From Salisapilia sapeloensis CBS 127946 (lineage: Eukaryota; Protista; Oomycota): a stretch of DNA of 43,197 nucleotides. The position numbers and the translations under genes are program-made. Positions within the stretch are counted from its first letter, which is position 1; each line of letters starts with the position of its first letter. The notes under the pieces were generated by a model. It saw only the letters and a list, made by a program, of their open reading frames with translations, made no database searches and was not told the DNA's origin. The DNA lies in assembly GCA_023334545.1 (NCBI GenBank), contig JAADVB010000165.1, forward strand, positions 1 to 43,197, in the 5' to 3' direction. Below, piece by piece: positions 5,510 through 15,800 of this stretch.

Positions 5510-6458
5510 TTATTGACCAGGCGGTGGGGGAGGCATATTGTTATTATATGGCGGCGGAGGTCCACGAGGGTTGGCGCCGTTGTTGGGGGCCATGCCAGGC
5601 GGCGGAGGAGGAGCGCCCATGCCAGGCGGTGGGGGCGGACCACCCATGCCAGGCGGCGGCATCATTCCGCCCGCTCCTCTCGGAGCCATCGGAGGCGGTG
5701 CAGCGCCACGACCACGGCCGTACGCTTGCGGAGGTGCACTCGCTGCGACTACAGAGAGATAGGAGTTAGTAAAGGTAGAACGGATGGAGGTTCCATCAAA
5801 CTAAGATCATTGGTAGGTTTGAATTAAGTATGCTCATGCCCACAAGGTTCGGAAGGACATACATCCAGCCACCGTTCACCTCATTATATCAATGGGGTCA
5901 CTTATCTGTTCGTTTTTATCATCTGGAACCTTTAGAAAAACAGTATCGTACCTTGTCCAGGTGGCACCATGCCAGGAGCAGCTCCTCCGACTCCGCGCAT
6001 AGGGGCTGCTAGACCCATAGGAGCAGATCCTGCAGGTGCGGCGGGAACACCACGACCGGCAGCCCGAGCCACACCAGGTCCAGCAGTCGCTTTCGTGTCC
6101 TCGGCTTTGTTGAGCGGCGGGCCATCCACAGATAACGAGACGACGTTTTCTCCTCGAAGGAGAACGAGTCCCAAGTGACGCTTCTCTGTGCGTTCTTCTG
6201 ACGTGTTATTTCCCTTGGCCTTTTTCAGCGTGCGGAACTCTTCGCAATCACCCAATACGAGGTTCATGTGCTTATCGAAAGCGAGAAAGTAGCCGAGGAG
6301 CACTCGAGTGTCCTGCAGCGTCACCTTCAGGCGATAATTGATGTAATTGAGCATCTTGCTACTCTTGCTCATGACCTGGAATACGGTTTAGCATAAGAGT
6401 TTGTGGTAGAATAATGTATAAAGAGCGAAAAGTAAGCAAAATACGGCGTACGCACCAT
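5510..6458 (-). CDS. SmB: Small nuclear ribonucleoprotein SmB/B'
   Basis: Sm1/Sm2 motifs ([35 protein letters not shown]; [14 protein letters not shown]) and a Pro/Gly/Met-rich tail. Probable ATG-only exon 6458-6456, intron 6455-6376, exon 6375-5952, 203-nt intron 5951-5749, and last exon 5748-5510. Confidence 0.94.
5788..5931 (-). ncRNA. Intronic box C/D guide RNA (sno/scaRNA) with U2 snRNA antisense elements
   Basis: 8-bp terminal stem AGGTTCCA/TGGAACCT. C box ATGATAA (5922-5916), D' GTGA (5901-5898), candidate C' ATGAGCA (5837-5831) and D TTGA (5799-5796). Guides GAACAGATA and TGATCTTAG are complementary to conserved U2 nt 37-45 and 21-29 (human numbering). Confidence 0.8.
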
Positions 6459-12817: not shown

Positions 12818-15800
12818 TTACTCGTCGTCATCTCCAGATAAACCTTCATAGCATGTTTTACCCGCAGCATTCGGGATCGTGTCATCAGCTCCTTTCTCTA
12901 TTAGATAATTTGCCATATCTCTGTGGTTGTACTCGATCAGATAATGCAAGGCCGTGTTTCCGTGGATGTTCTGTCAAGGATGAACTGTTATTACTCGATC
13001 AGCAGTATATGTGTATAAGTCGTACCTGAGCATTCATATCCACTCGCCGTCGCATTAAAAGCTTTGCAATCCTCTTGTCTCCCTGTTGACATGCGAGGAT
13101 AAATAAGGAGTTACCATGGTCGTCTCGAACATTCATGTCCACTCCATCGTCCAGCAGAGTTTCGAGCTATATTTTGAAGACATTTCTAAGCAACAGTATA
13201 GTATATGACGAAAGCGTGCATACCCCTGAAATGTTGTTGGTTTTGGCACAAAGCAATGCTTTAGCCACCTTGTTTAATTCCGAATTTTGCGCTTCTGTAA
13301 CATCTTCCTCATGGGAGTTGCCGACTTTCTTAGATTGAACGTCTAGTCTTCGCATTTTCTCGTAAAGATCGTTCCTTATTTGTGACGTGAACATCGTCTT
13401 TAGCTCCGGATCTAGCTCGTTTATTGTATAGGCGCTGCACTCCCATGGTTTTCTTATGCCTACTGGAGATGGTCTATTCGTGCAATTGATCCACGCATTT
13501 CTTTCTCTTTTTTCATCCGCAGCCACAACATGGGTTCCATATACGTTTTCATGAAAATTTGGAGTCAGTCGAGGACATCGATATCGACGCCACCCTTGTC
13601 CATAAGAAAGTTTTCTTTCACCGTTCAAAGCTCTCTTCTTTTTATGCAAAGATCTTATCTTTAATTGCATATTCTCTCGGTTATCTCCCTCCTCCTTTAT
13701 CATCCGCATCAGCTCACTATCCTCTTCTTCATTACTCAAGCTGTCTTCAGCTGCCTCTGTATTGTCTTCCATATTAGAGGGAAAGTCATAATCGTAAGTG
13801 CTAGCTATTGCCTGCTGGCATAGACCGAGTTTTTCTTTCAGTTTTTCGAGAAACTCTTCATTTGCTAATAGGTTTTCAATTAAACCTTCTTGATCAGAAG
13901 CTTTTTCAACGTCAACAGTCGGAGTTGGATCGGTTCGCGAGCTGAGAGGGTACGTTTTGCGCTCACTGTCAGTTAAACGAAATCCTTCTGGTTTGTCGAA
14001 CGTACACCGATCGCGTACATGGACAGCATTGCTTTCAATCGCAAAATAAAAAGCAACTTGGCTCTCACGAATCATTCGTTGTTCCCATTTCCCACATGCA
14101 CCAGTTGCGTCAGACGCTGCGAGCCTATCTTCCCACTCTTTATTTTCTTCCAATATCACCTTTTCATCGTCTTCTATATGGTTAATTTGTTTCTGCAACC
14201 AAGCCTTTTCCCTCGCTTGCTGTCTTTCAGCTTCCTCCTTTTTAGCAGCAATCAATAGACGCCCTTGTTCCAATCTTACTTCGATCGCTTCCATTTGTCG
14301 TTTAATTTCTTCTTTCTCTCTTTCTTGAACCAAGCGGTCCAGGTGCTTGGATAGCTTATGTACATGCACATCCCGCATCATTTCGTGCGTTAATAAGATG
14401 ACGAAAAAGCTACAATCCGGGCGCGAATAAAAGATTCCGTTCGGATTACTGATAATATCAATGAAATCCTTTGCAATTCGTCTTCTGGTTAACTCTCGAT
14501 CCTCTTCCTCGATGGAGTGCCACGTTGATCTTCCACATTTCCCGACAGTATTTGGCTGAGCCAGTTGGACAGCACACATGCGAGCACTGACGTCAAAATC
14601 CGGCTCAACAGCGTTGACTGCAATTAAGCTGTCTCGAAAGCCACGTGACCTCAGCAGTTCGTCCTGATGTTGCAGCTTTATACAGAGTGTGTCTTTATCA
14701 TAATAGAAATAAGGGTTATGCGTCAAAGTTGTGGGTGGATATCGTCCGTCGAGGTTTGAGAGTAGTTTAGCTTTCTGTAGCTCAACTGTCAGAGAATGCA
14801 TGACCTCTGGTATGTAGCTAGGCTGGAAAAGTACGTCGATATACCCTTGATTTCTTGGGTGATGTATACTTCTGTCCGGCGGATGTGGCGTTGAGTACTC
14901 GTGAATCCAAGCTAGCAAGACTGGAGCCCGTATGGTTGCATCCAAAGCCATCACCAGTTTAACAAGAACAGTGTTGGATGAAGATGTTTTCGGGTCCCGC
15001 TCGAAAAGTGCCAATGCTCTTGTCAGGTCCATGTTTCGGATACCGTCCAACTCGAAGTACTTTTCGTTGGAATCAACAATACATCGAAGAAGCGGAGCCT
15101 TGTTCTGTAATTGAGCTCCCAATACCTTATTAAGTAAATTCGGACACGCATCTTCGTCCCACTGACCACAGACTAGCAATGAAAGAGGAAGTAGTTGAAA
15201 GTCTGTAATGTCGATCTGCTTATTCTCTATGGTAACTCTAGATCGGTCCGTGTGATTTCCATCACGACTCTTTGGTGCTCTCGCATGACGAAACTGCTGA
15301 TATGCATCATTTAATGGCTCGACATGTGCCTTTGATCTCCTCTCTGAAATGGACTGAATTTGCGAGTAGCCTCTAGAAATAGAAGCGATGTCCTTTCGAT
15401 CCTTTAAACCGTTCTCATCGTCATAGTTTTTACTGTGATTAAAGTGATCCAGGTTTGTCAGCCAAAAATGGTTCACATCAAAAATATACGTCTTCTTCTC
15501 GTTAAGCAGTCTTGTGCTTTTCTTCGTGGACAGATTGGCAAGGTCAATCTGATTGTGTGCTTTGTCGTATACCGGGTGTCGTTCGTTGAAAGCTTTAAGC
15601 TTAGCCTGTTCTTCTGGGTCTTCTGTCTGCTGTATCTGTTCAATCGTTTGGTGATATTGGATTTCGCGGTTTACTTCACATCGATATAGGTTGTATAAAT
15701 CTCGAAGTGACCAGCTCTGTGGATGGAAGTTTGGCAACTTTTGATGCCTAGGGAGTATTTGTCGATGATGATTGCATCCAGTTCGCCGTTGAGGATTAGA

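Follow-up and report, generated by a model that had tools for sequence, protein, structure and literature searches.

The second intron of the SmB gene of the oomycete Salisapilia sapeloensis CBS 127946 very probably carries a box C/D guide RNA that is specific for 2′-O-methylation of U2 small nuclear RNA and is co-expressed with SmB. The element spans 144 nt from terminal stem to terminal stem (5931–5788, minus strand) within the window, by which we mean the whole stretch of DNA analysed here (positions 1 to 43,197 of contig JAADVB010000165.1). Its anatomy, the splicing of its host intron, its conservation and covariation in oomycetes and its complementarity to native oomycete U2 were all observed directly. 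An earlier note on this DNA had proposed, from the letters of the window, that the SmB intron holds a box C/D RNA with two guides directed at U2; the proposal is borne out by a conserved and covarying element that retains both kink-turns (K-turns) and matches native U2.

The host gene and its introns

SmB (Sm protein B) occupies 5510–6458 on the minus strand, with coding segments at 6458–6456, 6375–5952 and 5748–5510 in a frame read from the window. Its product has an Sm/LSM domain (PF01423) and a proline-rich PPPGM tail, and its first 140 residues are matched best by oomycete SmB proteins (74–77% identity, all with PF01423) from Phytophthora, Peronosclerospora, Hyaloperonospora, Saprolegnia and Aphanomyces. 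Intron 1 (6455–6376) measures 80 nt; intron 2 (5951–5749, 203 nt, phase 1, GT..AG) holds the predicted box C/D RNA and has a UACUAAC branch site at 5771–5765. RNA contigs from five runs (X2, X4, X5, X6 and X8) contain the 5748/5952 joint, skipping 203 nt with borders that read CT..AC on the plus strand and GT..AG on the SmB strand; the 203-nt intron is therefore real. The loose ends of these contigs run on into the upstream exon, across the 80-nt intron 1. In orthologous SmB genes intron 2 sits at the same codon position (..GGxCAAG/GT). The length given for this intron in the earlier note was correct, but not the accompanying statement that it is about three times longer than the others, as it is ~2.5 times the length of intron 1, the single other intron mapped.

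The SmB ATG is split from the remaining coding sequence by the 80-nt intron directly after it (6376–6458, minus strand), and an ATG/GT arrangement is also visible at the Aphanomyces and Saprolegnia SmB loci. A convergent Yippee/Mis18-like gene after SmB is common to Phytophthora, Peronosclerospora and metagenomic oomycete contigs (loci L002, L001 and L008/L009, respectively). Upstream of SmB, Sas10/Utp3 is found in L001 and L002 and a Pex2/Pex12 RING gene in L001.

Anatomy of the element

The features expected of a box C/D RNA follow one another along the minus strand of intron 2, from 20 nt inside the 5′ splice site to ~22 nt before the branch site. The 5′ strand of the terminal stem (AGGTTCCA, as RNA AGGUUCCA; 5924–5931) pairs at all eight positions with the 3′ strand (TGGAACCT, as RNA UGGAACCU; 5788–5795). 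A 3-nt bulge, GAU (GAT in the DNA; 5923–5921), comes next, its A5922 and U5921 overlapping the C box AUGAUAA (5916–5922), which agrees with the consensus RUGAUGA at six of seven positions. Antisense element 1, or guide 1 (GAACAGATA(A), as RNA GAACAGAUAA; 5902–5911), precedes the D′ box GUGA (5898–5901). The 60 nt between D′ and C′ form an internal hairpin (5838–5897) that would serve as the canonical stem of the C′/D′ K-turn and contains the motif GAACGG..UCCGAAC (5877–5847); its 3′ strand leads through a 3-nt bulge, CAU, into the GA of the C′ box AUGAGCA (5831–5837), giving a second kink-turn. A CUAC block at 5813–5816, the window's version of a more widely conserved (U)ACUAC, is followed by antisense element 2, or guide 2 (TGATCTTAG(T), as RNA UGAUCUUAGU; 5800–5809), and by the D box UUGA (5796–5799; three of four positions agree with the consensus CUGA), whose UGA abuts the terminal stem directly. 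Both antisense blocks end 1 nt upstream of their box, D′ or D.

The C box departs from consensus at position 6 and the D box at position 1, and these two positions lie opposite one another. After the stem, the order of elements in the C/D motif is the GAU bulge, tandem G–A pairs (C opposite D), U·U, A–U (C6:D1) and A–U. Judged by its sequence, from which its geometry is predicted, the motif is a standard kink-turn with the usual G–C replaced by A–U. C and D boxes, a terminal stem with kink-turn sequence, D′ and C′ boxes and the placement of the antisense elements are the features by which the box C/D class is recognized, and all are found here. Arguing against membership are the non-consensus boxes (C, AUGAUAA; D, UUGA or AUGA) and a D′ duplex of only 9 bp. 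In these respects the description in the earlier note, with its 8-bp terminal stem, 3-nt bulge, tandem GA, four boxes and ~60-nt hairpin on the minus strand, was accurate throughout. The opposite strand was considered as the RNA-coding strand and rejected, as it carries U2-sense sequence and no boxes.

How readily could such an arrangement arise by chance? When both strands of the 43-kb window were searched for the scaffold (a stem paired at 8 of 8 positions, a 3-nt bulge and UGAU ... UGA), a single site was returned, 5788–5931, and the same scaffold is expected 0.22 times per window from shuffled sequences; by itself, the scaffold is thus weak evidence and mildly unusual. The fold energy is unexceptional (z = −1.4), and complements to U2 of 8–10 nt occur elsewhere in the window at chance frequency. 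One of them, a perfect 10-nt complement to U2 nt 36–45 (GAACAGATAC), lies at 15632–15641 on the minus strand with no box scaffold around it, ~3 such 10-mers being expected by chance per 86 kb. What raises the finding above chance is that the complements are placed exactly beside D′ and D and that the element is conserved in eight other oomycete SmB introns.

Rfam returned no match at gathering thresholds for the window or for seven orthologous loci, and none at E ≤ 10 over 5600–6100. The Rfam check, which the earlier note had proposed, thus places the element in no described family. It is an undescribed member of a well-known class, the box C/D guide RNAs.

Conservation and covariation in two oomycete orders

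We retrieved SmB loci through their proteins and aligned nine sequences, the window and eight others. These came from Peronosclerospora sorghi (L001), Phytophthora nicotianae (L002), Aphanomyces astaci (L003), Thraustotheca clavata (L005), three Logan assemblies (L006, L007 and L010) and one AT-rich oomycete represented by two near-identical JGI metagenome contigs (L008 and L009), both of which contain an exact match to the two-guide pattern with a variable gap. The same element is present in the orthologous SmB intron of all eight other genomes or assemblies, which belong to two orders, Peronosporales and Saprolegniales. The Saprolegnia parasitica locus (L004:2319–2417) was uninformative, because a stretch of N breaks up the SmB intron and the annotated protein is truncated there.

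Thirty-five columns of the nine-sequence alignment are invariant, namely the CCA/UGG base of the stem, C-box UGAU, GAAC-GAUAA, the GA of D′, GAUCUUAGU and D-box UGA, whereas outside the element the intron sequence is unalignable between species. The UGAU core of the C box is the same in 9/9 sequences. Guide 1 is invariant in 9/9 except for one A-to-G change in P. sorghi, which keeps a G·U pair, and GAUCUUAGU, the core of guide 2, is invariant in all nine. Orthologues have NNGA (GUGA, GCGA, AUGA or CAGA) in place of D′ at the same distance, (A/C)UGAGCA as C′ in all seven Peronosporales-type sequences, and AUGA as the D box in the eight orthologues.

Conservation of primary sequence is accompanied by covariation of the stems. 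Five of the eight terminal-stem pairs are changed on both sides across the nine species, a level reached by 0 of 500 shuffles, and over the tested structure as a whole (the stem and the two K-turn pairs) the proportion of paired cells is 84%, compared with 31–50% in controls in which one strand was slid, and is again reached by 0 of 500 shuffles. The length of this stem, 8 bp in the window, ranges from 5 to 14 bp across orthologues, the 14-bp version belonging to Thraustotheca. The basal stem of the internal hairpin covaries too (CCCA/UGGG in the window; CGGG/CCCG, GUGGG/CCCAC and CUCGGG/CCUGAG elsewhere). All nine sequences have a bulge of the form NNU, after which GA stands across from the GA of D; the 3-nt bulge before the GA of C′ is always kept, and both K-turns are retained. 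The earlier note had suggested aligning SmB introns across oomycetes for conserved boxes and guides with covarying stems; boxes and guides are indeed conserved and the terminal stem covaries. Its description of the C6:D1 deviation as compensatory applies to the window, where the pair is A–U, but does not generalize: the pair is U–A in two Saprolegniales and a C·A mismatch in six other Peronosporales-type loci.

A covariance model built from the alignment (R1) scored the window element at 87 bits and the eight orthologous elements at 86–121 bits. Searching the window with R1 gave nothing beyond 5788–5931 and no paralogue, and with filters off there was no match in the Ectocarpus SmB locus, which has introns, or in the intronless SmB locus of Chrysophaeum. 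An Ectocarpus 8-mer followed by AUGA just past the SmB gene was rejected, being at chance level and in the wrong register. With R1, the element can be annotated in any oomycete genome.

The surroundings of the element differ between introns. An external second stem lies outside the terminal stem in P. nicotianae (L002:1985–2111), P. sorghi (L001:2476–2601), a Logan assembly (L007:2022–2162) and A. astaci (L003:2042–2196), for example GTGGCTGG/CCAGCCAC, and might, to judge from the sequence, aid C/D assembly; the compact intron of the window is without it. The D box is 47 nt from the 3′ splice site in the window, compared with ~88–96 nt in other Peronosporales-type introns (L001, L002 and L008).

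Pairing with native U2 and predicted sites

All U2 genes of Phytophthora infestans and Phytophthora sojae are given in the supplement of PMC4640811 (S3 Fig), and the U2 pairing was tested against these Phytophthora sequences. Both read GGCTAAGATCAAGTGTAGTATCTGTTCT over the stretch matched by the guides, identical to human U2 nt 19–46, which we assembled from sequences printed in PMC3866641 and PMC12342898. The numbering of P. sojae U2 is that of human U2; P. infestans U2 is one nt shorter, in the stem I loop.

Nine Watson–Crick pairs join guide 1 to U2 nt 37–45. Guide 2 forms 10 bp (one of them G·U) with nt 20–29 in the window, and 9–11 pairs with nt 20–30 across the nine species. The (U)ACUAC block, a few nt upstream of guide 2, complements GUAGU(A) at U2 nt 33–38, the branch-site-binding sequence, and in the window CUAC complements GUAG(UA) at nt 33–36. 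This block keeps the register of the main duplex in seven of the nine species, and six of those seven have the full 6–7 bp, so that the extension over GUAGU ranges from 4 to 7 bp; in Aphanomyces the pairing with U2 nt 20–38 takes in 18 of 19 consecutive positions. Together the guides and the ACUAC extension cover U2 nt 20–45, including the whole branch-point recognition region. The probability that a 9-mer at a fixed position matches a 44-nt target is ~1e-4, and the element has two such matches and a further 5-mer. As judged from these sequences, it cannot reasonably be chance that three conserved blocks fall on a single 26-nt stretch of U2, follow its order and keep the register of D′ and D. 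A native U2 that does not pair with the guides had been named beforehand as a possible refutation; native Phytophthora U2 is perfectly complementary to both guides.

Application of the fifth-nucleotide rule places G5906, in the D′ guide, opposite U2 C40, and U5804, in the D guide, opposite U2 A24, in agreement with the counts first reported for the element. A D-box register that would yield G25 was rejected, as in every species no nucleotide separates UGA from the invariant UGG of the terminal stem. Cm40, beside Ψ41, is a U2 modification conserved from fission yeast to higher eukaryotes (PMC5733568, PMC7960923). A24 is absent from the list of human U2 2′-O-methylations, whereas the neighbouring G25 is methylated (PMC7960923); a literature search for Am24 in U2 returned nothing relevant, and we found no published modification map of an oomycete U2. 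The element thereby makes U2 modification in stramenopiles directly testable and predicts A24 as a new site.

A model for guide production and action

We infer that the RNA is released and accumulates, binds protein, directs methylation and acts in the nucleus by the following route. It would be transcribed within the SmB pre-mRNA and freed from the 203-nt intron once this has been excised. Snu13, Nop56, Nop58 and fibrillarin would bind the two kink-turns, C/D and C′/D′, and once these core proteins were bound exonucleases would trim the RNA back to its terminal stem. The two antisense elements would then pair with the 5′ region of U2 snRNA, the D′ guide selecting C40 for methylation and the D guide (nt 20–29, in most species extended by ACUAC over GUAGU at nt 33–37) placing A24 in the active site, so that the RNA would act like an animal box C/D scaRNA.

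A search for RNA runs that contain the 144-nt element listed none. The RNA contigs at the locus, drawn from eight run slots, comprise spliced SmB mRNA and a single 135-nt fragment over the exon/intron border (run X6), and a stable ~140-nt RNA was not seen among them. The fragment, from a closely related strain, leaves guide, D box and stem unchanged and has one spacer substitution; it looks like pre-mRNA or DNA, not a processed RNA.

Vertebrate C/D scaRNAs are localized to Cajal bodies through a GU/UG wobble stem. The tandem U–G/G–U wobble highlighted in the earlier note is present in the window hairpin but not conserved, as it sits in a window-specific insertion. A different feature of the D′/C′ hairpin is conserved in the Peronosporales-type sequences: an apical motif (5847–5877, minus strand) that also occurs in L002, L006, L007, L008 and L010 and is absent from Saprolegniales. 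In it a 3-nt bulge whose last nucleotide is A is followed by CGG, a U-rich loop, CCG and A. From its sequence, this motif could be a protein-binding or localization signal.

Alternative explanations

The element could in principle act on its own host transcript. We consider it improbable that it is a cis-acting structure of the SmB pre-mRNA, whose blocks complementary to U2 and K-turns able to bind Snu13 would sense or titrate U2 snRNP or Snu13 and tune SmB splicing and output to snRNP supply, instead of or besides a released guide. Such a role would be consistent with a host that itself encodes a U2 snRNP core protein, with the closeness of the element to the 5′ splice site and branch site (20 nt and ~22 nt in the window), and with RNA contigs at the locus among which the released RNA is not seen. 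It would also be consistent with complementarity that covers the branch-site-binding GUAGUA, that at 18 of 19 nt in Aphanomyces exceeds the needs of a guide, and that includes branch-site-like UACUAC without the bulged A. However, the double-K-turn box C/D architecture is typical of guides and unneeded by a simple decoy, which would equally have no need for antisense blocks exactly 1 nt upstream of D′ and D or for a covarying terminal stem. The D box lies 47 nt from the 3′ splice site in the window and ~90 nt from it elsewhere, and this wide variation speaks against a position-dependent splicing element. An unlikely though conceivable combination is a guide that doubles as a feedback device, in which the intron or the released RNP would pair with U2 that is free, unassembled or unmodified. 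This would couple the production of SmB to U2 modification and to the assembly of the U2 snRNP, in an arrangement kept since before the split between Saprolegniales and Peronosporales.

The remaining alternatives deny a connection with U2 or a functional RNA altogether. A genuine box C/D snoRNA that has an rRNA or other target, or is an orphan, and matches U2 by coincidence is highly unlikely. The guides were compared with U2 as the target RNA, 9-bp duplexes are short, and U2 complements of 8–10 nt are at chance level elsewhere in the window; set against this, three conserved blocks match one 26-nt U2 stretch, in order and in D′/D register, and the guide blocks are invariant across orders, as expected if they face the invariant 5′ region of U2. 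We give almost no credence to a chance resemblance within an ordinary intron with no functional RNA. Although the scaffold is expected 0.22 times per window and the fold z-score is −1.4, the element is kept in eight other oomycete SmB introns from two orders, with compensatory stem changes and unalignable surroundings, and its invariant blocks of 9–10 nt exclude an alignment artefact. A U2-directed box C/D guide is the reading we retain.

Relation to known guide RNAs

Most of the described guides for snRNA modification come from animals, and some from plants and fission yeast. In the literature library that we searched, there was no description of an snRNA-directed snoRNA or scaRNA guide in oomycetes or other stramenopiles. 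Animal box C/D scaRNAs for U2, such as human SCARNA2 (mgU2-25/61), SCARNA9 (mgU2-19/30), Drosophila scaRNA:MeU2-C41 and mouse MBII-19, likewise combine box C/D structure with sequence antisense to the 5′ region of U2. Two of them, mgU2-19/30 and mgU2-25/61, carry two guides for one snRNA, as the oomycete element does, and scaRNA:MeU2-C41 and MBII-19 share the modification predicted for the oomycete D′ guide, Cm40 corresponding to Cm41 in the fly. MBII-19 is listed as the guide for Cm40 in a mammalian table (PMC7960923), and the Drosophila C41 guide is reported to have no known orthologues in other species (PMC5733568). The guide for U2 Cm40, a modification that lies inside the branch-point recognition region, is poorly documented. 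The oomycete element differs from the animal U2 scaRNAs in having no detectable sequence or covariance-model relation to any Rfam family, in a second guide directed to A24 and not G25, and in complementarity that extends over the GUAGUA box. SCARNA2, going by the title of its 2004 description, is independently transcribed and capped, in contrast to the intronic oomycete RNA.

In being one per intron, in sense orientation and with a terminal stem beside the C and D boxes, the element resembles ordinary intronic box C/D snoRNAs, from which it differs in off-consensus boxes (AUGAUAA and UUGA or AUGA) and in a predicted target that is the RNA partner of the host protein. The human SmB gene, SNRPB, hosts SNORD119 in an intron, and this RNA is assigned to Am4560 of 28S rRNA (PMC1636440); the two RNAs thus share a host gene family, but SNORD119 has an rRNA target rather than U2. 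That box C/D guides from introns of protein genes can target U2 is illustrated by SNORD120 (U2 Am30 in snoSeeker) and SNORD89 (U2 Gm12) (PMC7960923, PMC1636440), although these have other targets, hosts and lineages and no sequence relation to the oomycete element. The element would provide a clear case in which a guide RNA is encoded within the gene of a protein that binds the guide's target, and is a conserved candidate U2 guide in a lineage to which major pathogens of crops and fish belong.

The U2 genes of oomycetes are themselves sites of a specific insertion. Utopia non-LTR retrotransposons insert specifically in these genes, cutting at nt 38/39, and disrupted U2 copies outnumber intact ones in Phytophthora genomes (PMC4640811). 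The Utopia cut site falls within the stretch of U2 covered by the two guides.
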